From Penicillus capitatus (taxonomy: Eukaryota; Plantae; Chlorophyta), in NCBI GenBank assembly GCA_965649825.1, contig OZ287705.1:248001-312000 (forward strand): a stretch of 64,000 nucleotides of DNA, given 5' to 3'. Position numbers and translations under genes: made by a program. Below, piece after piece: positions 9,246 through 42,387 of the stretch (its first letter is position 1; every line of letters starts with the position of its first letter). The notes below the pieces were generated by a model. It saw nothing but the letters and a program-made list of their open reading frames with translations, searched no databases and had not been told where the DNA came from.

Positions 9246-9379
9246 TCTCTTCCTCGGACGTCCACGTCTTAAGCACAGAGCAGACGCTCAGACATGTTCC
9301 ATAAGAAACAGATTCCCGTCGTTTTCGTGAATTTCGTCCTTCCTTCCTTCTGTCGCCCTTGTTTCCCTAATCTTTAGTC

Positions 9380-17465: not shown

Positions 17466-19439
17466 CATGCTGTGGCTGTGAGATTCGAACTGAAGGGACA
17501 CATTTACCTACAGCAGGCGACGCAACATGTCTCCTGACGTGTGCTGACTCCCTGCTAGGACACCAGGAGCTAAACATTCTGTCTACAGGTGGTTTTCTCT
17601 TACCTGGTCCCACATGAGAAGGATAGATGCGCAGGAGTGTATCCCTGGGAGCCAAGACTGCTGCAAGATGCTTCTTAGCCCTAAAGAGTGAGACGGAGTA
17701 GACTATACAGACCACTCAGCTGAGCAGCGAGGATTCATCTGTCATGGAATGGAGGGACTGTCTTGCTGTTCAGCACAGTCAGCTTGGTTACCTGTTCCAC
17801 TGGCTTGGACATCTGTAAGCGTTCCAAGCTGTGCTGCAGCCTGTGCTGTCTGCAGGTCTGTCTTTCATCCAGTCTACAGTAATCTGCCAAAGTGACGTCG
17901 AATGGACAGGTGCTGGCATCCTCTGCTGCGTCCTCATGTAGACATGAAGGACCCGCAGAGCATCGCACTTTCGAAAACGACCCGCTGGCGCCGTTTACTC
18001 GGACAGTCAATCGTGTGGGTTCGTTTCCTGAACTACGAGAGCAGAAGAGGCTGCCAAAGGTCGTAGAGTCCATCCACAGAGCAGATGACGCTAAGGGCGG
18101 CGGCAGACCTCCATCAAGGCACGGAATGGACAGTCCTCGACATCCTTTGCCGTCGGCTCCATACCAGACCCGATGGGGCAGTCGTATCTGTCGCATGTGC
18201 ACAGCAAGAGTCGTCGGAAATGACGGTCGACGACAACTGGAATGACAAGACGCTTGCGTCGGTCCGCCGCATGGCCGGCGTTTCTTACTTCTGTCATCAC
18301 AGATCGTTTCGGCGGCTGTTGTTTCTTGTATCAAAGCGTTGTGATAGGGCACTTTCGAAGCGCGGCTGGCAAATCCAGTTCAATACCTATGGCTCTCTCT
18401 CTCTGCCGTTTGTGAGATTGACAGCGGCGTGTCGATTCTTAGGTCGTTCGACGAAGTGGAATATACATCTTTGGCGTCGAAAGCAAAAGTATGCGCTTTC
18501 TGTCGATCGTGTCTTCTCGTTTGGCGACAACAACCTAAAACTTCTGCCCTTTGCTCACAACAATCATTTGAGGAACTCGAGGACGACGAGGGATCACACA
18601 CGAACCACTTCGCATGTTGTTCGAAACAAGACCGCATCTGTTGTCTGCGACATCACCACTGCACGATATGGAATAACTCTCGACGGGCTAGACTTCAAAT
18701 GGTCAATGCGATCTAGACAGATCCATAGAAAAACTTAAAAATACATATCTTCTGCCCCACAAGATCCTAGTCCCTTTGGGTATTGTTCCTCGCCTGAAAG
18801 CGAATTGTCCGCGTGAGTTTGTGTGGGCGTATTTCTTTGGATACCGTGCAGGACGGGAGGCGCTGTTGAATTGCTAGATAGGTACATTACCTTGTTGCTT
18901 GAACGTGCCGGCGCATTCTTCCTAACACTCTTTTCCGGTTCATCGTAGCTGTTGACAATCGCGCAAAAACAGAAAACAATGGTATTGTGTTCACCGACTC
19001 ACTTTGACTCAAATCTGGATGTGGCACGACGCAATCTCGGCCAGTGGAAATGTCCTCCTTCCTCTCAGAGAGACACGAAGGGGAAGATCTGCTGACGGGA
19101 GTCTATGAATTTAAAATTGAACACACAACTCGCTTAAACTAAGAGTATTGTTCAACATAGGAGAGCAGATGAGAAGGGGATGTTGTATCGGCGAGCATGC
19201 TTGGGTGAATCTCCATTTGGAGGCTAAGAGGAAGCACGCGGTGGTCACCGCTGTCGACATCTTGGTCAGAAGCAGGCATGTGGATGGTTCATGAATGGAC
19301 AAATGTTGACATCTTTGACTTTATAAACAGATATCACGCCTTCTACTTCAGTCGGAAGCTGTGCACAACGCAAGAACTAGAGACCTGTCCGCAGCTGCAA
19401 GATGTCCGAGTGGTCTGCACAGGCTTGTCACAGCTCTTA

Positions 19440-19917
19440 AGCACTAGGAGCTTCGATAGTGCAAGACACCTCGAGAGAAAGAGACAGAGGCTGAAAGCAA
19501 CATAGATAGTGTGATGTACTCGCCCCTGGCCGCCGGCGGCCAGAGGCGCTGAGATGCTTACTCTGATTGGCAGTGATGAAGCTGTGCTGCGATTGCAATG
19601 AAAGCAATAATCATTGAGAAGACGATCTCGTTCTCGTAATACGGTCGAGGGCGTCGTATGCGTCGAAATGTATACGGCGTCCTCGGCCGTACTTGCTTTC
19701 CATGCAGGCGCGTTACACTTGTGCCTCAGCGACACGCGACTTCTCGGTTCTCGACACTCGAGCAACGGTTTAACGTACCCTCTTCGACGTCGGATAGCAG
19801 GTCTCCGAAGATGTCTTTTCGTAGTGTCTCAAGCAAGGAGCTGCCCTCCGCAGAAAGTTGCCAGTCTTGGTCGACGTCTGTCTCCGCGGTCGACTTTAGG
19901 TTATCATAGCGCCTCAC
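19440..19917 (-). other. Conserved segment C1, possibly a small intron-containing gene or remnant; reading frame ambiguous
   Basis: Homologous to 33640-34105. One frame reads KCNAPAWKASTAEDAVY...LLNDYCFHCNRSTASS, then a gtaagc...cag intron, and ends at a TAA shared by both copies. The upstream part differs from copy 2 by a 1-nt indel. Confidence 0.35.
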
Positions 19918-21306
19918 TGCACCTGTCGATTTTTAACACGATTGTAAATTTGTCTGTTCATCCAGAATGCATGAGAAACACGAGAAAAGCGGCTATACAC
20001 GTCGGCTTAAGAAACGCCGCTTGACGATTTCGTCGTCCATTACAGTGTTCGCCGACACACAAAGACCAATCATTAGATTTCACACACAACAAATACAATT
20101 CCACAGGAGCGTTAGCCCTAAATGCCTCTGGCAATGGGCTTTAAACAATCATTCACACACAGGAGCGTTGATGCTCTGCACCGTCTGCAGATAGGTTATA
20201 CATAAAGCAATTACGCCCACACATCAGGTAAGGATCACAACAATACGTCATCCGTTTGTCCACTCTGAGCATCGGGGGCGATTCTTATATTCAGCTAAGG
20301 ATGTTACGAACGTCACTCCTGAGTGATAAAGAGAGTTGCTGTCTCTGGACAGTTCACTGTAACAGAATGGTCATCGTTGCGTAGAAGTGCTCGGCCACCT
20401 TCCTGTCAGAAAACAGGTAACAAAGGCAACAACAAACTGAAACATAGTCATCTCACGATCTATTGGTCAGATGCGTCGTTCCTCAACGTATCTACCGAAT
20501 CGCGCTGCTCTCCTGTACTCGAAACAAGAGTCCTCGAATCACGCTGAGCGACGAAGTAGGCAAAACCGTCGCATAGAGGATATCATTCGTCAGCGAGGAC
20601 AATACGTCCCTCCAAAGAGCGTCTCGTAAGTGTCCTTTCAATCTACAGTATAGACGTCGTCATTGTCAGGTATGATTTCCACGAGCTGCGAGCTGCGTAG
20701 GTAGATAACAGAACCTGACGTCTACATGGAGTTTACAATGCATCTTGAAACTACAGAACAATTGGCCAGTTGATCGGAATGATCTGTCGTTTCTTTTACA
20801 GCGTTGAGATGGTTGGATGGATGACGGTGACGCTCTTGCTTCTACAACCGGACGATTGGACGATGCGTTGAACGAGGCGGAATCTTTTGCGCACAGTGAG
20901 CCAGAGAGAGGGAGATGAGATCACAGGCTCTCCTCACTCTATCACAGTATTCGATTCGCGAAAGACGCACAGTATAGAACCTCCTGATCAGATTAAACTT
21001 ATAGATCGAACAACACCATCTTCCACTTCATCCAGTTTGTCAACCAGGACAGGAAAATCGGTCATTCTTTACGCCCTGATTTAATCGGGCCTGCCACATG
21101 TGCCAAATCGTGACCAACATTCAACAGAAGCTCTAAAACTCTAAAGACAGAGAATGCCAATCTTAGTTCGCTGGCGTGCAAAATAATGAACCCTCCAATG
21201 ACGTTCCTTCTTCATATGAGACAAATTGTAAGACTTCAGCATTCCACTCTACTTATTGCAAAGTTCTGCGTGGGCGGAAACATGATGGAAAAAAGAATGC
21301 ATGTGT

Positions 21307-24300
21307 TCAGGGAAGCAAGTCCGCGCTCTCGCTTCTGCGCAGCTTGCATGGGTGATCAACGTCCGGATCGTTTTCCACGGATAGCCCTCCAGCGAAGCTC
21401 TTGCATCTGCGCAGTTTTGAGGTGTTCACATCGACCGATGCATCGGAGATGGGGATCTGTTCGACAGCGCTCTTGCACCTGCGCAGTCGGGAAGGGACCT
21501 TGTCATCCAACACCTCCTCGATAGCAATCTGTTCCAGATCTTCGTCGTACATGAGACTCTCTGTCGTCCTTCTAACGGCCGTTTCTGACGGCGGCAACTC
21601 TCTGGCGAGCATGGCGCTCTTGCATCGGCGCATTCCTAGACTCTTTCTCTCGTCCAAGTTGTCTTTCATGACGATCCGATCCACCACTTCTCGACACACC
21701 GGGCACCTGATCGCCTTCCCTGTGCGCAGATTGTCCTTCAACACGCTCAGCGCACAAGTGTTGCAGTAGCACTTGTGTCTCCTGGTGTAGCAGCATACGA
21801 CATTAGAATGGATAGTAGGAATTGCTCTTACGTGTCTCCATGGACGGCAGAGCATGTGGGGATTTCTGCTTCTTGGTCAGGATTTGTTGCCTTGGACGAT
21901 GCACCTTTGTTTTTCTTTGTAAAAACTCCTGTCTTGCTGTTTTCTTTCTTTCCCTTGGGAGCAAAAGTTTTTGTTGTCTGTGGACGGTCTGTTGCCTTGG
22001 TGGCCTGTCCCTTCTCCTTTGCGGTTGAACCTTTAGTCTGCTGCGTGTAGTCTGCTGACTTGCTAGCATCTTCCTTCGCATCGGGAGCAGAGTTCTTTGT
22101 TTTTCGTGTGCGGTCGGTTGCCTTGGTGCTCTCTTCCTTTGTCTTTGAGGTTAAACTCTTGGGTTTCTGTGTGTTGTCTGCTGACTTGCTAGCTTCTCCT
22201 CTCGTCATAGAGGTTGAACCTTCAGTCTTCTCTGTGTTATTTGCCGACTTGCAAGCTGTTTCTTTTGCTTTGGAGGTTGAGCCTTTGGTCTTCTGCCTTT
22301 GTTCTGCTGCCTTGATGGCCTTTTTCTTCACCTTGCAGGGCAGGCACTCCTTGATCTCTGCTTCGACAGTTCTTGGCTTCCAAGGAGCGGCGTTCATGAT
22401 GACGCGATCGACTTGCTTACGGCAGAATGGGAAAGGACACACACGTGTTTCCCCGCCCTTCAACTTCCTGACGATCCTCTTGTTACAGCCCTCGATGCAG
22501 TAGCACAGATGCCTGTTGCAGCAATGTTGAAGTGCAACAACACAGTTCGTCAGACGAGAAGAGACGCACCTGCTTTCAAGATCGTTGTCTAGGGACGTTT
22601 GGCAGAACGGACATCGTTTATCCCATGAAAACGTTGCACTCTCACATCTGCGCAGCAGCGGGACTTGTGGTAGAGTCCATGTGTCCACGAAAACAGTCTG
22701 ATTGGATGGCGCCTGTTGGATTGGATTCTCGACGGTACTGTATGCCTTGACCGCCTCATGTAGCTTATTGTAAGCAAACAGGGCCTTCTTATACGTACGG
22801 TTCGTTAAGTCTCCCCACCATGTGATCTGTTTGGCTTTAGCAACGGTCTGACTCATCGACTGCCGGTGTCGTGGGATCTCAGACTCACTTTTTCCCAACA
22901 ACTCCTCTGTTATTTTTTCTAAAGCGCACATTGCTTCCTCACACAATCCCAGCATTGAGTACGTCTTCAGGTTCTGTTCGGCTTCCTTAACCGTCTGGCT
23001 CGATGGCTCTTCCTGAAGTTGGACCTCTGCTCCATCGTCGTCCATGATCGCATAAGCTAGTTTTCTAAAGACGGACAATGCTTCCACATATCTGCGCCGC
23101 GTTAAACTCCTCTGCGTGATCTGTCTTGTTTCGGCAACTGTCTGTCTGGATGACCCTTGATAACCTGGGACATTGGCGCTGTAAGCAGCTGGAGTTTTCT
23201 CCAGTAGCTTTCCTATTGCAGATATTGTTTCGTTATATCTGCGCACCACCAAGACTCTCTGCGTATTCCGTTTGTTTTCAGCATCGGTCTGGCTCGATGA
23301 CTCTCGTTCTACTGGGACCATAGCTCTACAAACGACAGAAATCTCCTCTTCCAGCATCTCTCGAACAGTCGCTGCGCTCTTGCATCTGCGCAAAGCGGGG
23401 ATTCGCTCATCGTCATCAGCATCTTCGACGACGATGCGGGCCGCCTCTCTCTGACACACTGGACACTTGTGCTTGCACTTCTTTTCAAGCACCTTCGCAA
23501 ATTCTTTGCACGCACAGAGCTGGCAGTAGCATGTGCATTCCCTATACATCAACGTGAGCAGAAACTCATTGACCGTTATGTGATCAGACGAGTATCTATG
23601 CAGCACTGAGCAGGTCGGACCGTCAGCACCACACACAAGGCATTCTGATGTCGTCTTCTTGCAGGTCGATATCTTCTTTGGGCCAGCCTTGCTGGCGACG
23701 CAGTCTTGAATAACTCTTCCTCTCAGTCTCCTGGCGAGCTCTTTGCCGCAATCCGTGCAGTAGCAGAGGTGTTTCCTGACACAGCATGATATTCGGTAGA
23801 ACGCGTGCTGAAGACATCGCTACGTGTTGCCGTGTCTGACGGCGCAGGTGGGATCGATGAAGCATGTGGGACATCGTTCGAAGTAGGGACCGTCGTTCGT
23901 GATGACTCTCTCCACCAACTTCTCGCACACAGGGCACTTGATCTCCTGCTCATCAAGCAGCGCCTCCTTCAGTTTCTTGGCGCATTTGGTGCAGTAGCAC
24001 AAATGCTTTCTGGGAGTTGGGCATTGGTGGGTCATGAATGAGGAAGGAGTGTCTTACGTGTTGCCGTGACGTACAGAGCACGTCGGGTCAATTCGGCAGT
24101 ACCCGCATTGCTTTACGTGATCGACATCGAGGAGGATAACTGTCGCAGTCAATGTGACCCAGCCCCTTTCCAGGAATCCGAGTGACTCGTCCGCCAACTG
24201 GTCACTCGTTAAGAACTTGCGAAAGCCGCAGCCTGTGTCTGCTTTAATGCTTCCGGCGAATTCTGTACAATCTCTTCAGCAATAAATGTTGACTGAATAC

Positions 24301-27300
24301 GATGCTGACTTTCAACTCTGTCTGCAGAAGTCTTCATTGTCGATTTGTGATTTAATGCGCGGAACTCATTTTTCACGCGAACAGAGTGATCTTGACAGTT
24401 CCGTAGGTAAAGACTGATGTTGTCGGAGTTCGAGGTATTTCCCTTCGGCTCAAGTACCAACCTCCTGCATAAACAAACTCGCATGTAGCTCGATAAGGGT
24501 GAACCCGGGAGATGTCGTATGTACCATTTAGTTTCTCTAATGGTGAAGATCTCCGAATACAATACTGATGGACATAGACTTGGCAGTCCCCTCAGCTTCC
24601 ACTACGGATACCAACTGTCAAAGTGCTTCGAAGGAGAAGTGGAATATACGGTGCATGTGGCTGTCTTTCGTTTGACTGAGACTGTCCAGCGCTCATTGTC
24701 CTGGAGCTTGAGTCTTATCTCTGCACGCACGCGGAAGAAGCCATTCTTCATGAATCCATTCCGCCAATCGTTCACTTCCGCAGCAGGGTAGAGTGAGAAG
24801 CCTAAATAGTCTTTGCACAAAGCAGGAAATAACTCTTCAAAGCATCCTTCAGATAAACACAATTTCGATAGGTTACTATCTGTAAGAAATCTACCACCTC
24901 CGAATTCACTCTTGGCATCTGCTTTATTCACGACGGTGAAAGCGATATGAGCCGTTGCCCTGGTCGTGCCCTCGTTCCACAGGAAAGCACAAAGGTTTCC
25001 ATCAAAGCGGTGCAAAATCTCCATACGCCTAAAAAGATCCACCGTCTTCAGGTAGGTCGTCGATGATCACTGATTTGACCATTCTCTGCCATCTAGATCG
25101 AACGGATTGGTACTTAAACTCACGTTCCTCGTCAGAAGCAATCTTCGTTGTACTCTACACTGTGAAAGAGAAGGAAAAGATTACTACGCAGAAGAGGTGA
25201 TGTTTGGCAGAAGAGACCTCGTATGTGGCGTAGTACTTGTACTTGTTCAAAACGGAAGTGTAAGGAATGCCATCGTCTTCTCCACTTCCCTCTGCACTCA
25301 GTGACCATCGAAGCAGAAGATAGACATCGTTTGAAGACAGACCTTCGACGCGCATCAGTTCGCGAGGATCAGGCTCCTTCCATCGACAAGGCACCCGCTC
25401 CCGAGGTCTTGATATGCGCCTGATCTCCTCATCGAACTCTGCTTCATCAAACAGCGTTATCTTGATTTCAAACACCGTCCAGCCATCTTTAACAAAGCCC
25501 AAGCCTTCGTTATCCAGCGGACGCGGAGTGGACAGATCGACTATTTCCCTTTCATCGTTCTGACGGATTACGTGATGGCAGCCTAAACTGTACTCTTTGA
25601 TGCAAGCGAGACACAAGAGACAGACGAACTTATCAATCTGACTTTCTTGCAGTCGTCCCAATGATTAAGAAGTTTGATTTCCAAAAACATTCGAATGAGT
25701 TTTTCTGTGCTCTGTTTTTGAATGGAAATGATCGGAAAGCTCCAACCAGTTATGCCGTTGGCATAAAAGAACACTTGCCTACTCACAAAGAAACTCCAAA
25801 CGGGCGCCGCGATACCTGGAAGACACTCACAATGCCGAGTGTCCAATTCTGATGGTTTCAGTGGCAACGTGCCATGGACTCATTTCTCTCAGGAATCTCG
25901 ACCTCCACTAAACTCCAGCTTTCATGTGAGACAATGCACCGAAACGTAGAATAAAGATACCTGACAGGTCGCAGTTTTCCCGTCCACGATGACCTCACAT
26001 GATTCATTGTTTTCTTGTTTCACTCTCATATCCAAACGAACAAGAAAATAGTCATCCCTCAGAGATCCATTCCCCGATGACGATATCTCGGCGTATGGAA
26101 GAAGTCTGGCTTCGTAACAGTCATCGATGCACGAAAACTCATGAAGAGATCCTAACAAAACACCACTCCGCCTCGAAGACTCTCCTGAATCCGTTTCCTT
26201 TACCGGTACGTTCGCTGCGATCGTCGTTGTAAGGATGCACCAACTCGAATCCAAACTGCACTTTAACTCGAGCTTCATTCTTCGATGAAAGACAAGCAGT
26301 GAGATATCCGTCTTCAGCGCGCTTCATTCCAATACACCTTGAATACGTCAGATCATTAGAAATACGAAACAGTGTCTTCTTTGCACCATAGTCGGTCTTC
26401 CACCTCGAACGCATTTGTCCAGATCTGTGAGGTACCATCACGCGGAAAGAATCGGTACACGAATAACTGTCCGAACACAAATTGCCACCGCAGTGAGATA
26501 GACATCTTGGATCTCTCACTTCATAGCGTGCGAACCACTCGTTTCTTGCCAGCCTGTAGCAATAATCGATTTCATCAACCCATCCAACGCCCCCTGTCGA
26601 AAGGTGATCCCAAGTGATTGCAGTTCTTAGAAATCTGTTGGTACTTTGATGTAGGACTCTAGTGCTACTATCGATTTGGGGAAGACGATGCCTCGAAAGT
26701 CGTCTGCAGAATCGAGGCACTGCTTTTTTTAAAGCCCGATGGTTAATCAGGCTGATCTTCATAGACATATTCAACCAACCATCCTCCATGATCGAAGAAA
26801 GGTCGTCCGCTAAATCCTTATCTCTGAGGTATCGGACCCATCCTTTAGCAGCGCCAGCGTTAATCTGCTCTGCAAACTCTAAACAGAGGGGTTAGAACAG
26901 ACCGATAACGGCGTAAAGAACTCGAGATGCGGTTGTCTGAAGAGGAACCTGTTATGAGGCTGATTTTACCCTTAAAACAAGCATTCGAGCTGCCCATATT
27001 CGCAATCAAAACGCTCAGACCATCTGCACCGAAACCGCCGCCTTCCTTGCATAGCCTCAACTCCCTGTGCAGTAGACATGAGATCCATTGTCACAGAACG
27101 AAAGGCTGCATTGTCCACAACTCACATGTCCTGGTCTCCGATTCTGAAGTGATCCGTTCTTACGACAGGTGGACTCATCTCCCATAGATATTTGACGTTC
27201 CACTGACACCATCCACTTTTCGGCGATTAAAAGGGCTTTCTTGTTACTTACTTCACACAACACTGTCCTTTTTCCAGGAAGAATCCTTCGCCGAATGGCA

Positions 27301-28654
27301 AATGTGGTAGATTCGTTTTCTGGACACCTAATCCTTAATTCCAATCGCAACATGAACCAGTCTTCTGTTAGGTATTCAAGTGAGATATCCTCGGCGGTCG
27401 ATGCCATACAGAAGGGATCGACCTCCTGGGGACTGCTATCTTGGTTCTGACGATCAAAGAACGACGCTGCAGGACACACACGTCTCTTCAATGTATTTAA
27501 CGACGTCATGCCTCTATACCTCTGACAAGATTCTTCCTTTCGTCTTCATGGTTGACGAGCGTGAATGAACAGTGAGCTTGGACCGGTGAAGACGTTGCTG
27601 ACTGTAAACCAACGACCAATTTCTGATTGCCTTGATGGTCGGCGAGAATTTTCCTGGCAGAGCAAAACGAATGAAGGCCGCCGGTCATTGCTCTCGACCT
27701 CACCATTCCTCGCCGCCGATGTCAAATATGTTGGACTCTATCTTCCGATTCTCCTCGTCGAAAATAGAACGGTGTACACGCCACTGCGGCAGAGAGGATG
27801 GTTAGGATTATGACAGCACAAACGAAGAAGGTTACTTCATAGACCCCATACCACAAATAACTGCTCAGAGTGAAAGAGTACTCCACTCCATTCGACGACC
27901 CGCGTCCCTCTGAAGCGTCGAGTCCTGGAACCGTAACTTGAGAAAGGACGAACCTGTAACTTGCATGAGGGGACGTTCAGACTCCATTCGAGAGACTGAA
28001 ATAACGCTGCGATGAAGCAGCGGTCGAAAAACAGGGAAAACAGGCAGTGTTCGCGAAGATTCACCGGAAAACTCTTCAAAACGTTTAAATGTGAAAATTG
28101 CTGACGTGACACTTGGTCCAATTGTCTCTGCCATGAAGCGGTGCCAGCGAGGACTTGAATCTGCAGAGAAGTGCTGACGGTAACGAAGACGAAACGCCAA
28201 GCGAAGAAGAACAGAGACTGGTCCCCTAGTGTCTTCCAAAAAAGACACAGTGCTCCGTGCAGATCGTGGGAGCATTCGGTGCATCGTCCGTCGTTCTGTT
28301 CAGAAACCACGAAACCATTCAAGTGTACAGGTCGAGCCGTTTGTTGCACATAGGCTTCCTTTCTCGGAACTCCAGGAGCGCTATCTTTGCGCACAATCCT
28401 GTATAGGCAGCGCATTGGGCACATCCCAGTTTGTCACTGGTCATTGCCTTCTAACTCATCTGCCATCAGATTGGCTTGAGCGATCTTGTTGGGAGAGAAT
28501 GAGGTGCTGTCGAAGATATCCTCCAATTTGCAATGGATTTTACCTGGTGAAATACGAATGAGATGTTCTCCAATCGCATTCCACAGAGAACCACGATGTC
28601 AAACGGTGTGAAAAGTAAGAGACCGACAGGCTGCTGTCTACCCTTGTTAACCAC
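21307..28654 (-). CDS. B1: multi-MATH/TRAF (6 domains) plus 5 MDM2-type RING modules; putative E3 ubiquitin ligase; 5' end unresolved
   Basis: Spliced frames give MATH signatures, e.g. ESNIFDIGGEEW-KI...FTLVNHEDERKN (27.8-27.5 kb) and WKLRGLPSLCPSVLYSEIFTIRETKW-RLVLEPKGNTSNSDNISLYL...GFLERGWVTLTATVIL (24.6-24.1 kb). The last MATH is followed directly by CGYCRIDPTCSVRHGNT-RKHLCYCTKCAKKLKE...CPVC. Introns of 44-57 nt recur at equivalent positions in each module, and I met no frame break at the junctions I checked. Confidence 0.85.
21872..22292 (-). repeat. Coding 63-bp (21-aa) Lys/Thr/Ser-rich tandem repeat in B1, 6 copies plus a partial
   Basis: KTKGSTSKAKETACKSANNTE / KTEGSTSMTRGEASKSADNTQ / KPKSLTSKTKEESTKATDRTR / KTKNSAPDAKEDASKSADYTQ / QTKGSTAKEKGQATKATDRPQ / TTKTFAPKGKKENSKTGVFTK. 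Confidence 0.85.
22694..23315 (-). repeat. Coding ~147-bp (49-aa) repeat in B1, 4 copies plus a partial
   Basis: Units begin PVERESSSQT, PGYQGSSRQT, QLQEEPSSQT, PRHRQSMSQT and PIQQAPSNQT at 49-50 aa spacing. Each of the four full units continues into an amphipathic helix (e.g. RRYVEALSVFRKLAYAI). Confidence 0.8.
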
Positions 28655-29896
28655 CGTCTCTGCTTATGCTACTGAATCTTGATTCCGCCTAGTCAGTCAG
28701 CGAGAGTGGGATCTGCAGGGAGGAGGGCAGCGTCTGGAACACATGATGGTGCAAAGCAATGGTAGCAGGCGCTTCTGTCATCCCATCTGTTGGCTCAGCG
28801 AACTGTATGCGTGGATGAGCGGTGACGATCAACACTAGAGATCGTCATCTGGTGGATTTGGCGCGTTGAGAAAAGGAAAATAAGTATCCAGACGAGCAAT
28901 CATATGTGTTCATCTGACACAGTCTCGAGCTGCATCCGTGCTTTCAACAACCTTGTGTGTTTCCCCAACTTCAGATGACAAACCAATTATGGACTTCATC
29001 ATCGAAAGCGATTCCTTATGTTCTGCCGATTTAGGTAAAATGATACGAACGCGCTGACGATGGAATCCGATTCGACCGATTGCCTCCCCGCGGTGCAGTC
29101 TTCGCTGATGACGACCTTTGCTGAGTTCTTCTTCTTCAACCACAGGACAACCGTTTTAACGGACTTCATGCATTTTCTCTGTGCCGTACGCCTTTCGCTC
29201 AGCTGACGGACAAACGTCAAGTCTCTGCGCTTCGATCAGCCGCCGCCCTCGTCGATCAGCAAAACTTCCCAGCGGTCTCGTCCACTTCTAGCTGCACAGA
29301 ATTGTCTTCGGGCTTAAGAGACGCAGACGAGGAAGAAAGGTTTATCCCATAACGGCACATTCACTGAGCTATCTACGGGGCATGCATTCTGGATGCAGAT
29401 ACACGGCCATGACAAGCCGAAACACAGAAGCAAAGAGGTCGCATGCGTCCCAACGCCATATACCTCACAACGTGCGCAGAATCGCCGTGTTAGTGACGTA
29501 CCAGGAATCGACGTCCGTTTTCGCTGTCGTCTTATCCATCGGTGTCCACTCGCCTCAAGTCCTCGTCAGACGCAATGATGATCTGTGAGAACTGTCCACT
29601 TCAGAATCTCCGGCGAAACGTTCGCGAACATGACTGACGTGACCGTATTGCGCAAGGAGAGCCACTTATCCTAGACAGCCAGCGTTTCGACTTCTCAGCA
29701 GTATCCGCACAAGTCGGCGGCACCTAATTATATAAGCGGGTTAATTTTGCACTACCGCGCACTTGTTTTCGTAATTGCTTTTCTCTGTAAATATGTCTTC
29801 CCTGAAAACCCCTTTCGAACAAAAGATATTTCCAAGTAAAAAGGCTGTTGCACAAGGCATTGACTGAACGAGAAATCCTCATGGTCCAGGGGACGA

Positions 29897-32069
29897 ATGG
29901 ACGACGCATGGTCGCAACGGTCGCTTCGCCGCCGACGGCTCAGGCAAGCAAGCCCCTTCAAACCCTTGCCGAACAAACAAACTGATAACGTGTTTGAAAA
30001 TGAAGGGATGGAACGCACGGAGCACGACGAACGGCACGCGCTGCTCTCTGGCTGCCTTACTTCGTCGACGGGATTGCTCCGCGAACTGCTGATTAGCTCT
30101 TCACACGAAGATGACCCTTCTGGCAGGTACACGAGCGCCGTCTGTCGTTTGAAGTAGACGGCTTGTGACGCTCGTGCTGCGTCTAGAGTGGAGGCGTGTC
30201 AGACAGGCGACCCGTTAGCTGTGCTAGAATCGCTCGCACCCGGATTCGTGTTCGCCCAGCGGTGACATCCATGGTATCATTTAAGTCCTTCTTTGTCATC
30301 CATCCTCTTGTCATTAGATATGAGATTCAGCGAGAGAGTGATAAACTGGAACCGCATCGTCGTTATGCCCACGACTGCAAGACAGGAAAGAACGTTGTTC
30401 TGAATTTTTTTGCAAGCCACTCGGATTTCGTGGAGTCCTGTCGAAATCACATCATCCTGCGGGGCGAAAAATGCATGAGCAGGTTGGGTCCTTTCATGCA
30501 ACGTCGCTGCGTAACTGTGTGAGTGTGTGCTAGCGTGGTGGATGCAATCGACAATCATCTGAACTTCCCGTCCTGCATCGTCGCCGAACGCGGCGACATG
30601 CTCCTCTCTGAAATGCTGTCGACCATGCTGGACTGTACAGCCGCCGAGCTCAAAGGCCAGCTCTCTTCGGTAAGCCCACATCAATGCCTCCCGGATCGAC
30701 ACAGTATCGCTTGCTTTAGATACTCCGAACTGTGGAGAGGCTTCACGGCAAAGGTTTCGTCCACGGAAGTCTACATCCCGATAACATCTCTTTCTTCTGT
30801 GCCGAAAATCGCTGGAGACTGATCGACACTGGAAGCATGGGGAAAAGCGGCCAACGATTCGTCGCGCTTCCAGCCGATGACAAGTATGCGGCACCGGAGA
30901 TCTCGGCGGCGAGGAAAGCAGGGACGACGCACATACGCCTGAATCCGACATCGGACATGTGGTCCTTTGGTCTCATCGCTTTCGAAGTCTTAACATGTAC
31001 GGACGCTATACCCCAACGATTCGAAGGTTTCGAGAATGCCTCTCTGCCGATTTCTAGGTTCGCGTATTCGTGACGTGGATGGCGTGCAGAACCTCGTGGA
31101 TCCTATTGCGGCAAGCTCCCTCTGTCAGCAAGTTACTCTGCGTCTCTTCGTCGGCATCAGAAAAAGCCCCGCGTTCAATCTGGATCCCCAGACGCAGCGG
31201 TTCCTGCATACTCTACTTCGCAGCCGAAGAAGCATTCGAGCTACAGCGTCTCGTGCCCAGAAGCTGCTCAACGCTCCGCACATTTTCCGTCCTTGGCCGC
31301 GCCTGGATCGGATTCTGGACGTACATCCGATGCAAGACCAATTGATGCAAAACGATTGAATTTGTTTCTGTAGATGCGAAAGCCCCATGCCACGATGACG
31401 GAATCCGACGTTTGCAGAGAGATCCTGTGTCAAATGCAGCAAAGTCGACTGACCTTCTCGATCAGGATCGAGGATTTCAAACCCTTCGAAGGAGAACCCG
31501 TCAATTCTGGAACGTTTCACAACGTTCGAGCAAAATCGACGCTGATGGCCCAAGACAGCCTCGTGAAGAAAGAATCCATCTATATACTCAACGCAAGAAC
31601 ACCGTACCGTCTGAAGATCGCGCTGGGCCAGCAAGATAGAGCCGAGAGCAAGATCGAACAGGTGACGGCTGTCTCCATCAAGACGCCAGAAGGGGAATTT
31701 GTCAAGCTCGAACACCGGACGGACGACTCTTCCAGCGACAACACAGTCTTGGCTTTCATTGATCCAGAGAGGGAAAGGGGTTTGGAGGCACTTCGACATC
31801 CATGTCGGTTGTTTGGCAACGTGGATGAGAGATTCATGCCCCTGACTGTGAAGATCGAGGTCGTGTTTGAAGGACAGCCGAAACCAGCAATCTTTGAGCT
31901 GCCCATCCGGTGCAGAGTGGTCCGGCACTGCAGAAGACTCCTTCGTCGAAGGGCGGCACGATTTCTGCAGGAGAGCGTGGCCAAACTGCCCACAACCGTT
32001 CGAAAGATTGGCAGAAACGCGATTCGATTCGTTAAAACTCTAACAAAGCATCTCGTTGGCCTGGGATGA
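29897..32069 (+). CDS. Pseudokinase A4 plus C-terminal beta-rich domain, head-to-head with B1
   Basis: ORFs 29897-30157, 30196-30522, 30523-30822, 30732-31073, 31036-31359 and 31374-32069 join through GT-AG introns of about 50-60 nt. Motifs VVLNFF (Lys to Asn), HGSLHPDN (Asp to Ser), LIDTG, YAAPE, DMWSFGLIAFE. Confidence 0.85.
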
Positions 32070-32155
32070 AGCTCGCTAATCGGTAGAACAGTAGAAGGAT
32101 CAAACTGGCCAGTCTGCGAAGGAGTGGAATTCACGTTTCTCGTTGGCATTCACCA

Positions 32156-32240
32156 CATCCTCCATCTCCAATGTATGTATTTTTATTGCATCCTCCAACT
32201 CCGGTGTGTGTATTTTTATTGCATCCTCGATCTGCAATGT
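32156..32240. repeat. 33-bp tandem repeat, about 2.6 copies, downstream of A4
   Basis: CATCCTCC...GTATTTTTATTG units start at 32156, 32189 and 32222. Confidence 0.8.
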
Positions 32241-33639: not shown

Positions 33640-34105
33640 CAACTCTTAAACACTAGAAGCTTCGATAGTGCAAGACACCTCGAGAGAAAGAGACAGAGGC
33701 TGATAGCAACATAGATAGTGCGATGCACTCGCCCCTGGCAGCCGGCGGCCAGAGGCGCTGAGATGCTTACTCTGATTGGGGGTGATGAAGCTGTGCTGCG
33801 ATTGCAATGAAAGCAATAATCATTGAGAAGACGATCTCGTTCTCGTAATACGGTCGAGGGCGTCGTATGCGTCGAATCGTATACGGCGTCCTCGGCCGTA
33901 CTTGCTTTCCATGCAGGCGCGTTACACTTGAATCTACACGCAATGCGACTTTTCGGTTCTCGACACTCGTGCAACGGTTTGCGGCATCTTTTCGACGTCG
34001 GATAGCAGGTCTCTGGAGATGTCTATCCGCTGAGTCTCTCAAGGCGACGGCACCTGCAGAAAGTTGCGCATGTTGCAGCGGAGTGGCGTAACTCTGGTCG
34101 GACAC
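33640..34105 (-). other. Conserved segment C2, paralog of C1
   Basis: ORF 33528-33974 matches 19343-19765 almost residue for residue over KCNAPAW...DYCFHCNRSTASS. Confidence 0.35.
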
Positions 34106-35160: not shown

Positions 35161-38100
35161 TCAGGAAAGCAAGACTGCGCTCTCGCATCTGCGGATCTTG
35201 TATGGACAGTCATCATCCAGATCGTTTTCCGAGGTAAGCCCTCCTGCGTAGCTCTTGCATCTGCGCAGCTCTGAGACGTCTGCCTCGTCCGATGCATCGG
35301 AGATTTCGACAGCGCTCTTGCACCTGCGCAGTCGGGAAGGGACCTTGTCATCCAACACCTCCTCGATAGCAATCTGTTCCAGATCTTCGTCGTACATGAG
35401 ACTCTCCGTCGTCCTTCTGACAGCCGTTTCTGACGGCGGCAACTCTCTGGCGAGCATGGCGCTCTTGCATCGACGGATCCCCAGACTCTTCCTCTCGTCC
35501 GAGGTGTCCTGTATGATGATCCGATTGACGACTTCTCGACACATCGGGCACCTGATCGCTTTCCCTCTTCGCAGATTGTCCTTAAGCACACTCAGCGCAC
35601 AAGCATCGCAGTAACACTTGTGTCTCCTAGTGCAACACATACGAGATTAGAATGGATAGTAGGAATTGCTCTTACGTGTCTCCATGGACGGCAGAGCATG
35701 TGGGGATTGGTGCTGCTTGGTCAGGATCCGTTGCCTTGGACGATGCACCTTTGCTTTTCTTCGTAAAATCTCCTGACCTGCTGTCTTCCTTCTTTGCCTT
35801 AGGAGTAGATTTTTTTGTGTTCTGTGAACTGTCTGCTGACTTGGCACTATCTTTCTTTGTCTCTGGAGCAGAACTTTTTGTTCTCTGCGCACTATCTGTT
35901 GTCTGGGTGGCCCTTTCCTTTGCCTTCGAGGTTGAACTCTCGGCCTTCCGTGTGCCGTCTTCCGCCTTGTTAGCGTTTGCTTTTATCGTAGAGGTTGAAC
36001 CGCTAGTCTTCTGGGTGCTGTCTCTCGACTTACTATCTGCTTTCTTGGCCGCGGAGGTTAAACCTTTAGTTTTCTGCGTTTGTTCCGCTGTTTTGATGGC
36101 CTCCTTCTTCACCTTACACGTCATGCACTCCATGATCTCCTCTTCAACAATTCTTGGCTTCCAAGGAGAGGCGTTCATGATGACGCGATCGACCCGCTTA
36201 CGGCAGAATGGGAAAGGACACACGCGTGTTTCCCGATACTTCAACTTCCTGACAATCTTCTTGCTGTAGCTCTCGATGCAATAGCACAGATGCCTGTTAC
36301 AGCAATGTTGGAGTGCAACACAGTTCGTCAAAGGAGAAGAAGCTTACTCGCTTTCCTGGTTGACGTCTCTGGTCATCTGGCACAACGGACACTGCTTATC
36401 CCAGGAGAACATCGCACTATCACATCTATGCAGCAGTGGGACTTTTCTCAGAGTCGATGCGTCTTCGACGACAGTCTGATCCGATAACGCTTGATTGAGC
36501 GAAGACCGGACTGTACTGTAGATCTTGATTTTTTTCTTTAACTTTAGGAAAGTGGACATTGTTTTTTGATGTTGACGCTTCCTCAAGTCTCCCCTCCGCT
36601 TGTGCTGTTTGCCTTCAGCAACTGGCTGACTCGTCGACTCTCGGTGACCTGGAATTTCGGCGCCACGTTTGCCCAACAACTCCTCTGCTGTTTTTTCTAA
36701 AGCGGACATAGCTTTCTCACATAATCCCATCACTGCGTATGTCTGCGCGTTCTGTCTGCCCTTTGCAGGGTTTTGACTCGAAGGCTCTTGCTGAAGTTGG
36801 ACCTTGGCTCCACAGTAGTTCGAAATTGCATCGACTAGCTTCTTAAAAGCTGACAGTGCTTGCACGTATCTGCGGAGCGTTAAACTCCTCTGTGTGTTCT
36901 GTCTTTTTTCGGCAACTCTCTGACTCGATAGCTCTTGCTGAAGTTGGACCTCGGGAGCTCGTTTGTCCGAAGCCGCATCAACAAAGTTCTTGAGAGCGGT
37001 TATCGCTTTGTTACATCTATGCACCACGAATTCTCTCTGCGTACTCTGTCCGCCTTGAGCAACGGTCTGACTCGATGATTCTCGCTGGATAGGGACCACG
37101 ACTCTGTGCATGCCAAGATTCTCATCCTCCAGCTTCTCCCGAACGATCACAGCGCTCTTGCATCTGCGCAGAGCTGGGACTCGTTCATCGTCAGCAGCTT
37201 CCTTCACGATGATGCGGTCCACCACTCTCTGGCAAGCTGGACACTTGAGCTTGCACTTCTTGCCTAACACCTTCGCAAATTCTTTGCATGCACAGACCTG
37301 ACAATAACACGTGCATTCCCTGGACATTAACGCATGCAACAAGCTATTAGCGTTTCTGTGATCGTACGTGGATCCGTGCAGTACTGAGCAAGTTGGACTG
37401 TCGGCACCACACATATAGCATTTCGATGTCGTTTTCCTGGCAGGCGATATCTTCTTTGGGCCTGCCTTGCTGACGACGCAGTCCTGAAAAACTCTCCCTC
37501 TCAGTCTCCTCGCAAGCTCTTTGCCGCAATCCGTGCAGTAGCAGAGGTGTTTCCTGACACCACGAGACGTGCAGCAGAGTGTGCAATGATGGCAGCACTA
37601 CGTGTTGCCATGTCTGACGGCGCAGGTCGGATCGATGAGACACGTGGGACATCTCTCGAAGTAGGGACCGTCGTTCAAGATGACTCTCTCCACAACCTGC
37701 TCGCACACAGGGCACTTGATCTCCTGCTCATCAAGCAGTGCCTCTTTCAGCTTCTTCGCGCACTTGGTGCAATAGCACAAGTGTTTTCTGGCAGTAGGCA
37801 TAAGTATGTCGATGCGAGGAAGTAAAGAGTGTACGTGTTGCTGTGACGCACAGAGCATGTAGGGTCCTTTCGGCAGGACTCGCACTGTGGCACGCAATCG
37901 ACATCGAGGAGGGTGACTTTCGCAGTCAATGTGATATAGCCTTTTTTCAGAAACCCGAATGACTCGTCCACCAACTGGTCGCTCGTCAAGAACTCGTGAG
38001 TGCCCCGGCTAGTGTTCGCTTCAATGCTCTCGGTGAAATCTGTAAAAAAACGTTCACGGGCAAGCGTTCACTGAAAAGCGTACTGACTTTCAACTATGTC

Positions 38101-41100
38101 TTCGGAAGGCTTTGTCGATTTGTGATTCACTGCGCGGATCTCAGTTCTCACGCGGACATAATGATCCTGACAATTCCAGAGGTAAAGACTGATGGTGTCG
38201 TAGTTCGAGCTGTTTCCCTGCGGCTCAAGCGCCAACCTCCTGCAGTATCAAAGACGCGTACAACTCAACATGGATAGAGCCGGAAAATGTCGTAAGCACC
38301 ATTTGGTTTCTTTGATATTGAAAAACTCGGAGCACAGTATCGATGGACACAGACTTGGCAGTCCCTTCAGCTTCCACTACGGATACCAACTGTCAAAGTG
38401 ATTCGAAGGAGAAGTCGAACGTACGGTGCATGTGGCTGTCTTTCGTTTGACGGATACCGTCCAGCGCTCATTATCCTGGAGCTTAAGCCTGATCTCTGCG
38501 CGCACGAGGAAGTAGTTATACTCCAAGAACCCATTCCACCGATTGTTCACTGTCGCAGCAGAGCAGAGAGAGAACCCTAACTTGTCCTCGCAGACAGCGG
38601 GAAACAACTCTTCGACGGTTCCTTCGAAAAGAACAGGCTTTGAATGACTACTATCTCCGGTGGATCTATCACCTGCGAATGCACTCATGTAATCTTCTTC
38701 GTTTACGATACTGAAACAGTAGTGAGCCGTTGCCCTGGTCGCACTATTGTTCCACAAGTAAACAGCCAGGTTTCCATCGAAGAGGTGACAAATCGACAAA
38801 ATCCTAAGAGCATTAACCGTCTTTAAGCAGGTCATCGACGATTACAGATCTAACCATTCTCTGCAGTCCAGATTAAACGGATTGGTATTCAAGGTCCTGT
38901 TCCTCTCCAGCAGCAATCTTCGATGCACTTTACACTGTGAGAAAGAAGAGATCATGACGCGGCGACGGTCATGGTTTAGCATAACAGACCTCGTACGTGG
39001 CGAAGTACTTGTACTTGTTTAGAATAAAAGTGTAAGAAATATCTCCGTCTTCTCCACTTCCCTCTGCACTCAATGACCATCGAAGCAGATAGACATCGTT
39101 TAAAGACAGACCTTCGACGCGCATCAGTTCGCGAGGATCAGGCTCCTCCCATCGATGAAGCTGCCGATCCAGAGGTCTTGCTATGCGCCTCATCTCCTCA
39201 TCGAACTCTGCTGTATCAAACAGCTTTATCTTGATCTCGAACGTCTTCCATCCGTCTTTGACAAAGCCTAAGTCTTCGTCCTCCAGTTGACTTAGAGTGG
39301 ACAGCCAGGCTATCCCCATTTCTTGGGTTCGACGAATTACACGATGACAGCCTAAACTGTACCTTGTGGCGCGAGGCAGAAGAGACGAAGAAGGTACTCT
39401 TCAATTTGACTCTCCTGGAGTCGTCGGCATGATTGAGAAGATTGATTTCCAAAAACATTCGAATTAGGTATTCTGTGCTCTGCTTTTGAATGCAAATGAG
39501 TGGAAGGTTCGAAAAGCTCAGACCGTTGGCATAAAAAAACACTTGCCTACATACAAAGAAAACTCAAACGGACGCCACGATACTCGAGAGACACTCACAG
39601 TGCTGAGTCTCCAATACTGATGGTTCTGGTGCCAACGCGCCATGGACTCATTTCTCTCAGAAATCTCAACTCCCACTGAACTCCATCTCCAGTGTAAAAA
39701 GCAATGCATCGACCATAGAGGGAAAGATAACCTGACAGGTTGCTGTTCTTTTCTTCACGGTGACACTGCAGATTTCATTATCTTCCCGTTTCACTCTCAT
39801 GTCCAGACGAACAAGAAAATGGTCATCTTTAAGGAATCCATTGTCTGGTGAAGCTATCTTGCTGCGTGGAAGAAGTCTGGCTTCGCAGCAGTCGTCAATG
39901 AACCTGAACTCACGAAGGGTTCCTGTAGGCGCCAGCTTAACCTTACAGTCTACGCAGAATCCGTCCGCCTTACCAGTGCGTTTACTGTACTCTCTGTTCA
40001 AATTCACTAGCTCGAATCCCAACTGTACTTCCACGCGAGTCTCATTCTTTGATAGTAAGCAAGCGGAGAAATACGTGTCGTCATTACGCTTTATGCCAAT
40101 ACACCTCAAACATATCGTCAAGTTATCGGAAGAACGGAGAGGGTGTCTTCTTCGCACCATAATCGACCTTCCACCTCGAAAGCATTTGTGAAGATCTGTC
40201 CAGTCTTATGCAGAAAGAATTGATGCACAAACAACTGTTCGAACACAGGCCACCATCGCAGTGAGATAGACATCTTAGATTTCTCACTTCATAACGTGCA
40301 AACCACTTGTTTGTTGTCAGCCTGTAGCAATGATCGATCATATCATTCCATCCAACGCCCCCTGCCGTAGAGCGATCCAAAGTGATTGTAGTTTTTAGGA
40401 ATCTGTCGGTACCTTGATATTGCACTTCAGTGCAACTATCGATTTTGGGAAGACGATGCGTCTGAGGTTGTCTAAGAATTGGAGAGAGTAAGTTTCTAAA
40501 ACCCTCGTAGCTGACCAGGACGATCGTTGCAGAAATGTTTAACCAGCCATCCTCCACGACCGAAGAAAATTCCTTTGACAAATCCTTTCTACTGAGGCAT
40601 CGGACCAATCCCTTAGGAACGCCAGCGGTAATCTTCTCTGCAAACTCTGACCAGAAAGGATGGACGAGACCTACAACGGGTAAAAAACTTGAAATGCTTT
40701 CGTCTAGAAAGGGATCACTTCTTCCGATACTAATTTGAGCATAAACGCAAGCAGTCCAGCGGCTCATATTAGCCAGAAGAACGCTCAGACCATCTGCACC
40801 GAAACCTCCACCCTCCTTGCACAACCTCAACTCCCTGCGTGGCAGACACGAGATCGATTGGTATGGAACGAAGGCTGTATTGTGCACAACTCACATATCT
40901 CGGTCAGCGATTTTGAAGTGATCAGTTCGTAGGACAGATGGGCTCATCTCCCACGCATGTCTGATGTTCCACTGACATCGTCCACTTTTTCACGATTGAA
41001 AGGCACTTTCTCGACATTTACTTTGCAGAATACTGTCCATTCATGAATGTCGAATGTGACAGATTCGTTAGATGGGCACTTAATCCTCAATTCCAATCGC

Positions 41101-42387
41101 AGCATGAAGAAGTCTTTCTTTAGATATCCGGAGAAGGACTCCTTGATGATCGATGCCATGCAGAAGGGTTCGATTTCTCGAGCGCCACTGCCATTACGCT
41201 GCAGACGATTAGAGAAGCTCGCTGTGGGATGATCTCTTTAATAGATACTAAAGGCGTAGTGACTTCATACCTCTGACGAGATTCCTCTTTTCGTCTGTGT
41301 GGTTGACAAGAGAGAGTGCGAAGTGAGCCTTGACTGGTATAAACGACCACGACTGCAAGTCGGCTATCAACCTCTGTCGGCCGAGATGCCTTGCGAAGAT
41401 GCACCTAGGCAGACAAAATGGATAAATGGAGCACCACGCATTAGTCTGTCGCTGCACTGACCATTTTTCGCCACCTACGGCAAAGTTGCTCGAGAATATC
41501 GCCCTTTCCTTCTCGAAGATGGAGCGGTGTATTCGCCACTGCGACAGAGACGGAGATTAGTATTCTGACAGCACGAATAAAGACAGCGACCTCGTAGACT
41601 CCATACCATTGATGCGTGCTTAGTGCGTATGCATACTCCACTCCGTCAGATGACCCGTATCCCTCTGCAGCACCGATGCGGAAACCGTAACTCGAGAAAG
41701 ACGACGAACCTGTAACTTGCATGAGAGGACGTTCAAACTCGCTTCAAGAATCAAGTAAACTATACGATGAAGTCGTTGTCGGAAGAACGGCGAAACTCCA
41801 ATGGTCGTGAAAACTCGCCGAAAAACTCTCTTCGCATCGTTTAAATGTTAGAATGCTGACGCGACACTGTGACCAATTGTCTGTGCCATGAAGCGGTGCC
41901 AGCCAGGATGAGTATCTACATGGAAGCGCGGAGATTGAGAAGCCAAAACGCCCAGCGAGGAGAACAAAGAATCACCCTCCAATGCCCTCTCGTGCAGGCG
42001 CGGCTCGGCGCGGCGCGAATCGTGAGACCATTCGATCCATTGCGTTCTATCGAGGACAACGAACGATGTCTGCCCATTCAAAAGCACAAGGCGAGTCGTT
42101 CTTTGAACAGAGTGATTTTCTCAGAAGTCCAGGAGGTTGTCCGTGGGGCAATTCAGGATGGGCAGCGGCTCTCACGCATCTCCGAATCCATCATTGGTCC
42201 TTTCGTCTAAACAAACCTCGCTACAGAATCGTTCGAGCCAGAGGGTTGAAGAGAGAACAAGGTACTGCAAACGAGACGCCTCTCAGTTTGCCCTGAATCA
42301 ACGGTCAATGCGACAAGACTGATGTTCTCCACTCGAATCCGCAGAGAACCACGATGCCAAACGGTGCAAAAAGGGATGCGCCGCCAT
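35161..42387 (-). CDS. B2: multi-MATH plus 5 MDM2-type RING protein, paralog of B1; 5' end unresolved
   Basis: Same architecture as B1. RING exons lie in 37598-37989, 36344-37414, 35672-36331 and 35161-35640. MATH exons lie in 38.0-41.7 kb (e.g. RLALEPQGNSSNYDTISLYLWNC, HFALSLVNHTDEKRNLVR). Intron positions are conserved with B1. Confidence 0.85.
35716..36073 (-). repeat. Coding 21-aa repeat in B2, 5 copies plus a partial
   Basis: KTKGLTSAAKKADSKSRDSTQ / KTSGSTSTIKANANKAEDGTR / KAESSTSKAKERATQTTDSAQ / RTKSSAPETKKDSAKSADSSQ / NTKKSTPKAKKEDSRSGDFTK. Confidence 0.85.

Follow-up and report, generated by a model that had tools for sequence, protein, structure and literature searches.

Two kinds of protein are known to unite RING and MATH domains, the TRAFs and TRIM37, which serve as E3 ligases or adaptors and in which a single RING precedes a single MATH domain. 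The TRAF layout consists of an N-terminal RING, TRAF-type zinc fingers, a coiled coil, and one C-terminal MATH domain. The published MATH families comprise TRAF, TRIM37, meprin, USP7, MATH-only, MATH-BTB, and MATH-filament proteins, and the MATH-only proteins of plants and nematodes hold tandem MATH domains, commonly pairs, with up to four reported (PMC3664471). Among RING domains, the C2H2C4 type, in which C1, C2, C5, and C6 sit on one zinc and H3, H4, C7, and C8 on the other, has been called unique to Mdm2/Mdm4 (PMC6372010); dimerization is required in the MDM2-MDM4 pair, one partner of which is inactive (PMC6372010, PMC6465955). MIB1 contains three RINGs, and its activity relies only on the last RING and its coiled coil (bioRxiv 10.1101/2024.03.01.582834). 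Here, we analyzed a stretch of 64,000 nucleotides from Penicillus capitatus (contig OZ287705.1, positions 248,001 to 312,000; hereafter the window) and describe two tandem copies, B1 and B2, of an intact gene, present in at least five full-length copies, in which six MATH domains are followed by five MDM2-like RING modules. Compared with TRAFs and TRIM37, the order is reversed, with the MATH part N-terminal and the RING part C-terminal, both parts are multiplied to six and five modules, and the RING type differs, being the one described as particular to Mdm2/Mdm4.

Gene structure of copies B1 and B2

Exon chains were sought in the B1/B2 alignment that were open in both copies and had GT-AG introns at aligned positions, and the chain was refined by eye, guided by copy-specific stops and frameshifts, recurring exon sizes, and MATH motifs. 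The first joint dynamic-programming gene models were dropped, as they skipped exons, read through introns, and took the wrong frame in MATH-A3 and MATH-A5. In the final model, copy B1 lies on the minus strand (27966-21307) and has 25 exons, with a coding sequence of 5433 nucleotides (nt) that encodes 1811 residues and contains no in-frame stop. Its tandem paralogue, copy B2, is also located on the minus strand (41722-35161), with 25 homologous exons encoding 1778 residues, again with no in-frame stop. All introns of the two copies (48 of 48, 24 per copy) are GT-AG introns of 42-61 nt at homologous positions, with a pyrimidine at position -3 in 44 of them and a donor consensus near GTAAGT. A stop or frameshift is present in at least one copy for 22 of the 24 introns, introns 16 and 22 alone being in frame and open in both. 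The exon sizes are periodic: A-type MATH units are built from exons of 80 nt, 131-134 nt, and 191-215 nt, and B-type units from exons of 77 nt and 143-155 nt followed by a long exon extending across the linker. A chain of this kind goes well past what chance would give. The raw unspliced open reading frames (ORFs) gave weak Pfam signals. The window is eukaryotic sequence with approximately 50% G+C and very short introns, and Rfam and tRNA scans of it returned no match.

The MATH and RING parts belong to one gene and one reading frame, as the initial annotation of this stretch had assumed, because the end of MATH-B6 and the start of RING1 share exon 20. In both copies, this exon encodes the last MATH-B6 strands, nine further residues, and the first half of RING1 without a stop. 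The module order given in that annotation (six MATH domains, RING1 to RING3, four repeats, RING4, a split RING5, and an RRCKS tail) was recovered completely on the minus strand, and the mirrored architecture in copy B2 was likewise found with all elements on its 25 homologous exons. The gene had also been taken to extend to 28654, which did not hold: we place the coding start at ATG 27966, because this ATG and the donor behind it are kept in four copies and the frames upstream differ among copies. The region around 28654 is indel-dense in the B1/B2 alignment and has no consistent reading frame. An upstream ORF with an ATG at 28134 was rejected, since it is broken in copy B2 and frame-shifted in the L001 copy on another contig; it is probably part of the 5' untranslated region. 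Comparison of the upstream sequences revealed that about 470 nt before the start codon (27943-28413) share approximately 70% identity with the L001 copy, and the B1 upstream sequence is approximately 68% identical to the paralogous regions on the L003 contig and in copy B2. This segment, which contains a very conserved block at about 28080-28144 yet has inconsistent frames among the copies, is probably a promoter or 5' untranslated region.

Six MATH units in three double repeats

The MATH half covers residues 13-958 and consists of six units of approximately 135-143 residues in the order A1, B2, A3, B4, A5, B6, with linkers of 64-67 residues before MATH-A3 and MATH-A5. The MATH fold is an eight-stranded antiparallel beta-sandwich, and in this gene two or three introns interrupt each unit. 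The units were compared with the Pfam profiles PF22486 (MATH_2, cut-off 32 bits) and PF00917 (MATH). The MATH_2 cut-off was passed by MATH-B6 of copy B1 (54.8 bits) and copy B2 (44.9 bits) and by MATH-A1 of copy B2 (34.1 bits), while MATH-A1 of copy B1 (28.9 bits) and MATH-A3 of copy B2 (28.4 bits) remained just under it; MATH-B2, MATH-B4, and MATH-A5 had no direct Pfam match. Within each type, hhalign connected the units over 116-138 columns, with E values of 3.9e-13 (A1-A3), 2.6e-14 (A1-A5), and 1.1e-12 (A3-A5) for the A type and of 2e-7 (B2-B4), 1.7e-11 (B2-B6), and 2.1e-13 (B4-B6) for the B type. The links from A to B units are weak, with a best E value of 1.7e-3. A profile of all 12 units of both copies matched the SPOP MATH domain in the PDB at E=4.2e-9 (positions 22-138 of 140) and the USP7 MATH domain at 6e-3; an A-type-only profile reached the USP7 MATH domain at 8e-3, and profiles of A3+A5 alone or B2+B4 alone reached no PDB MATH domain. 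The MATH identity, on which the initial annotation had made its proposal depend, is thus borne out by MATH_2 scores above the cut-off and by the SPOP match. The predicted MATH half is a series of three double-MATH repeats, (A-B)x3, and the claim of six MATH domains stands.

The 80-nt exon of MATH-A3 was recovered in the frame reading TNAFEVEDRLW. The motif G-F-[RK]-K-F occurs in MATH-B6 only, and the residues of the SPOP groove are kept only in part. Linker L3, located before MATH-A3 (26547-26738, residues 293-356), shows a ratio of nonsynonymous to synonymous divergence (dN/dS) of 2.5 between copies B1 and B2 (dS 0.14, dN 0.35), which may be due to relaxed or positive selection, or to a dS lowered by local gene conversion.

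Five RING modules of the MDM2/MDM4 type

The RING half comprises five modules, each with a phase-2 intron just before a [KR]-H-x-C-Y-C stretch, and the ten spliced modules of copies B1 and B2 can be aligned with one another. When the ten-module profile was compared with the PDB, the 17 best matches were all MDM2/MDM4 RINGs (E=1.6e-4 to 1.7e-3, positions 3-59 of 63), and the next family was TRIM5 at 0.044. All eight ligand columns of the profile align with MDM2/MDM4. By sequence, the module pattern C-x2-C-x9/10-H-x4-H-x3-C-x2-C-...-C-P-x-C corresponds to the C2H2C4 octet. Of the five RING modules counted in the initial annotation, all are present, but RING2 and RING4 lack zinc ligands and are degenerate; C6 of RING4 is also lost in copy B2 and in the paralogues. 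Sequence hints of E2 binding and ubiquitin transfer are CP-x-C-R, found in RING4 and RING5, and the hydrophobic residue that lies within the C1-C2 pair.

RING5 is interrupted twice, by one intron and by an insert of 158 residues in its first loop, which parts CLPC from P-T-C. Its ligands are complete if CLPC (residues 1483-1486) represents C1 and C2. The low-complexity stretch was identified as an insertion because a distant relative, P0011, has a contiguous CHYCKADVPTC at this place. The insert contains 63-nt (21-residue) repeats at 21926-22256, of which copy B1 has one unit more than copy B2, a difference that appears as a 63-nt indel at position 22054.

Two other ways of splicing the modules were rejected. 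An alternative RING1 splice, with the donor after C-S and a canonical C-x-H, is inapplicable to RING2 and RING5 and loses the MDM2-like H-x4-H. An unspliced RING4, in which copy B1 would gain H-x4-H, conflicts with the paralogues, which hold a stop or frameshift in that stretch; intron 23, located in RING4, is therefore a true intron. Intron 22 in RING3 (23589-23542, 48 nt) is in frame and stop-free in all five copies examined. Its ends are splice-like in all copies, the donor being embedded in ACG-TAC (T-Y) and the acceptor always reading YAG/G within an AGG codon. Retention of intron 22 may yield two RING3 isoforms.

Repeat segment and C-terminal tail

Between RING3 and RING4 lies the repeat segment (REP), for which no Pfam match was found; SPOP and TRAF degron consensus sequences were also tried on its repeats and did not fit. 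Six RR[CS][KE]S motifs, mostly L-R-R-C-K-S, are distributed along the C-terminal part of the chain, one after RING3, one before RING4, and four in the tail. Conservation within the protein is highest in this tail and in the second half of RING5, with 74-90% identity to B1 in the four other copies compared and long invariant stretches. In two paralogues the REP segment is expanded in a lineage-specific manner, with approximately seven copies of a 33-residue unit (RNRESLSQTSAGGSRSRLIDLATRTSNERRPAR) in P0001 (L001 10001-12694) and approximately ten copies of MEGGRNIV in P0005.

Tandem duplication, selection, and further family members

The two copies arose from a tandem duplication unit of approximately 13.8 kb, in which 18639-32404 corresponds to 32935-46235. 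The main block (21303-32404 versus 35157-46235) is in the same strand orientation with 74-80% nucleotide identity, and a further block pairs 18639-19861 with 32935-34067. Between copies B1 and B2, dN/dS is 0.41 overall, 0.43 in the MATH region, and 0.20 in RING1-3, indicating that both copies are under purifying selection. Amino acid identity between the copies is 56-73% in the MATH units and 71-90% in the RINGs, with 79% in RING5. The introns of the two copies are separated by a Jukes-Cantor distance of 0.24 (79% identity), lower than the synonymous dS of 0.51, which is unexpected if they are neutral; constraint on introns of near-minimal length, gene conversion, or an overestimated dS could explain this. 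The duplication unit also holds an upstream plus-strand gene (31374-32069 and 45251-45898) with 71% amino acid identity between its copies.

At least three further full-length collinear copies, L001, L002, and L003 (Table 1), were found on other contigs, where tblastn with the B1 protein matches every part in order. Through P0004, one ORF of copy B2, the window itself maps to the 234-kb contig ctg340041_12x_l in ERZ25074695, a metagenome assembly of the ENA. On the L003 contig, the start of a second copy lies at 18357-21335, with an upstream region 96% identical to that of B1. Its identity to B1 changes from exon to exon in a mosaic of 54-100%, including 72 consecutive identical residues, which suggests gene conversion among family members or a second, divergent haplotype.

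In a word-indexed search of 5.8 billion proteins, a crude 2313-residue ORF concatenation and the B1/B2 alignment gave no match. The MATH profile recovered 22 ORF fragments on at least ten contigs from the same collection; those outside the window were all from ENA metagenomes, and no NCBI or UniRef protein matched. When the contiguous R2b-R4 stretch was used to search 1.84 billion representatives exhaustively by HMMER, 14 matches were obtained, of which the top ones examined (P0001-P0006 and P0008) represent the same large exon in paralogues and P0011 a more distant relative. Scans of JGI metagenome contigs revealed no relatives. Literature searches found no protein with the six-MATH/five-RING layout, nor is it included among the published MATH families (PMC3664471). 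The statement of the initial annotation that no described protein has this combination agrees with all of these results. The parts (RING, MATH, and ubiquitin-ligase modules) are known; their arrangement is new.

Comparison with described systems

The RING modules resemble those of MDM2/MDM4 in ligand pattern and spacing and in the hydrophobic strand that follows, and the RINGs are C-terminal in both. The motif V-x-H-G-x-T-x-H-L-x-x-C-x-x-C-A-K-K-L is nearly the MDM2 sequence. Mdm proteins have a single RING, in contrast to the five tandem modules found here, two of them degenerate, and searching the whole protein with Pfam gave no match to the p53-binding SWIB domain, the acidic region, or the RanBP2 zinc finger of Mdm proteins. 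B1 is accordingly not predicted to be an Mdm protein, and common descent is not established, the similarity being modest (E approximately 1e-4).

SPOP and the MATH-BTB proteins are the closest structural relatives of the MATH units. The MATH domain is the substrate-binding part of a ligase there and putatively here, but those proteins carry one MATH domain instead of six, and here the RING ligase module is fused directly. No BTB domain was matched by Pfam on the whole protein, so a CUL3 route is not expected. Faster divergence of the MATH part, compared with the catalytic part, is a feature shared with other MATH families. The MATH-only proteins show similar lineage-specific expansions and have no recognizable second domain, whereas a RING array is present here. 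TRAF-type zinc fingers (no zf-TRAF match at E<=0.1) and a B-box (no Pfam match) were not detected. The predicted protein is thus not a TRAF, an Mdm, or a MATH-BTB protein, the defining features of each being absent. MIB1 likewise has N-terminal substrate-binding modules and a C-terminal RING array, with a coiled coil before the last RING; however, its substrate-binding domains (MZM/REP/ANK) are unrelated, and the RING module profile had no MIB1 match in the PDB at E<=1, so that the resemblance is one of layout and not of membership.

Proposed function and alternative explanations

The explanation that we regard as probable is a lineage-specific family with B1 and B2 among its intact members, each encoding one chain of approximately 1,800 residues that would most likely be a RING-type E3 ubiquitin ligase. 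In this model, the six diverged SPOP-like MATH domains, (A-B)x3, would make multivalent contacts with short motifs of one target or of several, and the MATH array would form the fast-evolving specificity part. The MDM2-like C2H2C4 RING array would recruit the ubiquitin-charged E2. RING5 is the best catalytic candidate, because it has all eight ligands together with the Arg after C8. RING1 to RING4 could be intramolecular partners, as inactive MDM4 is to MDM2, or act like the RINGs of MIB1 other than the last. The helical REP segment might be a spacer or a self-association element, and the six conserved L-R-R-C-K-S motifs might have a regulatory role, for instance as targets of basophilic kinases.

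Several observations weigh against this model, and some of them fit other explanations. The Arg after C8 is found only in RING4 and RING5 and is absent from RING1 and RING3, RING2 and RING4 are without the full ligand set, and every zf-C3HC4_3 score lies under the 27-bit cut-off (26.6 bits for RING1, 24.2 for RING5, 21.5 for RING4 in its spliced form only, and 11.2 for RING2), with no Pfam match at all for RING3. These features would suit a non-catalytic scaffold or pseudo-ligase, in which the RINGs serve as structural or dimerization modules and the MATH partners are brought to another enzyme or sequestered, and MDM4 provides a precedent as a protein with the same RING type that lacks intrinsic activity (PMC6372010). 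We consider such a scaffold unlikely, since RING5, 79% identical in the two copies, keeps the eight ligands, CP-x-C-R, and the hydrophobic C-terminal strand, the four other copies compared match B1 at 74-90% identity over the second half of RING5 and the tail, and purifying selection is strongest on RING1-3 (dN/dS 0.20). On the MATH side, MATH-B2, MATH-B4, and MATH-A5 are called MATH domains solely through homology to their sister units. An AlphaFold (AF2) model of the segment from RING3 through REP to RING4, built with eight sequences, was helical with a predicted local distance difference test (pLDDT) score of 37 and was unusable.

Introns 16 and 22, which are in frame without stops and could be retained, leave the exact predicted protein uncertain at these two points. 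They also leave some room for separate MATH-only and RING-only products, which internal promoters, early polyadenylation, or alternative splicing could generate; the full-length fusion would then be rare or absent. This is a still smaller likelihood than the scaffold, because the MATH6/RING1 boundary lies inside one stop-free exon in B1 and B2, and the frame of 25 exons is open in both copies with the domains collinear in three more, which would be hard to explain if it were not translated. Decay of the copies into pseudogenes within a tandem array, or an artifact of metagenome assembly, appears very improbable as an explanation. Although the contigs come from a metagenome assembly at 9-23x, the mismatches in raw windows of the MATH region show little third-position bias, and one linker has a dN/dS of 2.5, the spliced coding sequence of 5.4 kb has no stop or frameshift in either copy, all splice sites are kept, dN/dS is 0.41 overall, and the architecture recurs in the independent assembly ERZ26696514 (1.8-Mb contig, 116x).

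If active, the family would represent a naturally occurring fusion of a multivalent substrate-capture array with its own catalytic module, and a test case for the cooperation of tandem RINGs, some degenerate, in one chain. The family also illustrates that long-read metagenome assemblies contain large eukaryotic gene families missing from annotated protein databases. More speculatively, and with considerable doubt, these might be fast-diversifying giant ligases spread by tandem duplication and gene conversion, in which a six-MATH array is wired to C2H2C4 RINGs that pair within the chain (an active RING5 with pseudo-RINGs); they could then act in recognition and ubiquitination with changeable specificity, for instance in defense or in the control of the adjacent co-expanded pseudokinase families. 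In that case they would also extend the C2H2C4 RING, so far called unique to Mdm2/Mdm4, beyond the Mdm proteins.

Table 1. Predicted features of the two gene copies, their relatives, and neighboring ORFs. Positions refer to the window unless a contig is named; residues are those of copy B1.
Feature	Position	Strand	Residues	Remarks
Gene B1	21307..27966	-		Exon table; GT-AG introns of 43-61 nt; stop TGA at 21309-21307
Probable start codon and first mini-exon	27954..27966	-		M-Q-V-T, donor ACAG/GT; ATG and donor conserved in B1, B2, L001, and L002
B1 exons 1-7	27966-27954, 27909-27836, 27783-27704, 27653-27520, 27466-27252, 27202-27126, 27064-26922	-		
B1 exons 8-14	26878-26520, 26466-26387, 26337-26204, 26151-25961, 25907-25831, 25778-25630, 25582-25218	-		
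B1 exons 15-20	25159-25080, 25028-24898, 24846-24650, 24601-24525, 24464-24310, 24262-24058	-		
B1 exons 21-25	24009-23824, 23775-23590, 23541-22570, 22512-21832, 21781-21310	-		
MATH-A1	27324..27886	-	13-148	Pfam MATH_2 28.9 bits in copy B1, 34.1 bits in copy B2
MATH-B2	26739..27320	-	150-292	hhalign to B6 E=1.7e-11 and to B4 E=2e-7, near full length; no direct Pfam match
MATH-A3	26015..26570	-	349-482	hhalign to A1 E=3.9e-13; unit of copy B2 MATH_2 28.4 bits, E=2.2e-6
MATH-B4	25443..26014	-	483-622	hhalign to B6 E=2.1e-13
MATH-A5	24704..25268	-	681-815	hhalign to A1 E=2.6e-14 and to B6 E=1.7e-3
MATH-B6	24120..24703	-	816-958	Pfam MATH_2 54.8 bits and MATH 25.0 bits, both above cut-off; model positions 2-136 of 136
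Exon 20, C-terminal half of MATH-B6 into first half of RING1	24262-24058	-	911-978	Single open exon, ...GWVTLTATVILLDVDHVKQCGYCRIDPTCSVRHGNT, both copies
RING1	23901..24107	-	963-1015	Complete C2H2C4, without Arg after C8; zf-C3HC4_3 26.6 bits, E=5e-6; MDM2 aligned ligand by ligand
RING2	23700..23873	-	1025-1066	Degenerate, single Cys at the C7-x2-C8 place, Arg site absent; partial zf-C3HC4_3 match, 11.2 bits
RING3	23427..23642	-	1086-1141	Complete, H4 replaced by Cys, without Arg after C8
REP, four repeats of 48-51 residues	22626..23423	-	1143-1408	Flanked by RRCKS/RRCES motifs; repeat alignment
RING4	22395..22613	-	1413-1466	Degenerate, without H3 once intron 23 is spliced; Arg after C8 present
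RING5, likely first Cys pair CLPC	22335..22346	-	1483-1486	C-x2-C-K conserved in paralogues
RING5, low-complexity insert in loop 1	21861..22334	-	1487-1644 (158)	Lys/Thr/Ser-rich, repeats of about 21 residues; self-matches at offsets of 63 and 126 nt
RING5, remainder	21667..21860	-	1645-1692	H3, H4, C5-C8, Arg after C8; zf-C3HC4_3 24.2 bits
Conserved tail	21310..21675	-	1690-1811	Four RR[CS][KE]S motifs; motif list
Gene B2	35161..41722	-		25 homologous exons; 65% amino acid identity to B1
L001 copy	5841-13247			ERZ25074695, 22.7-kb contig
L002 copy	about 5569-12323			ERZ26696514, 1.8-Mb contig at 116x
L003 copy	4838-12485			ERZ25074695, 512-kb contig
ORF with ~190-residue domain	494-1474	-		
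ORF with ~190-residue domain	5625-6239	-		
ORF with ~190-residue domain	10700-11761	+		
ORF with ~190-residue domain	31374-32069	+		
ORF with ~190-residue domain	45251-45898	+		
ORF with ~190-residue domain	50344-51042	+		
ORF with ~190-residue domain	53543-54352	+		
ORF with ~190-residue domain	55647-56219	-		

Neighboring genes in the window

At least eight other ORFs in the window share a domain of approximately 190 residues that has no Pfam match (blastp E values of 1e-4 to 1e-101; Table 1). At least two of them (494-1474 and 55647-56219) lie just downstream of a protein-kinase-like ORF with an altered catalytic loop, in which HRDLKPxN is replaced by HGNLHPSH or HGHVTPSH. These genes seem to form a second expanded family, possibly of pseudokinases that carry a new C-terminal domain. 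The window also contains an EamA-type transporter ORF at 14229-15089, as well as an ankyrin-repeat ORF at 47944-48636, which matches Pfam Ank families with up to 58 bits and has internal repeats at the nucleotide level.

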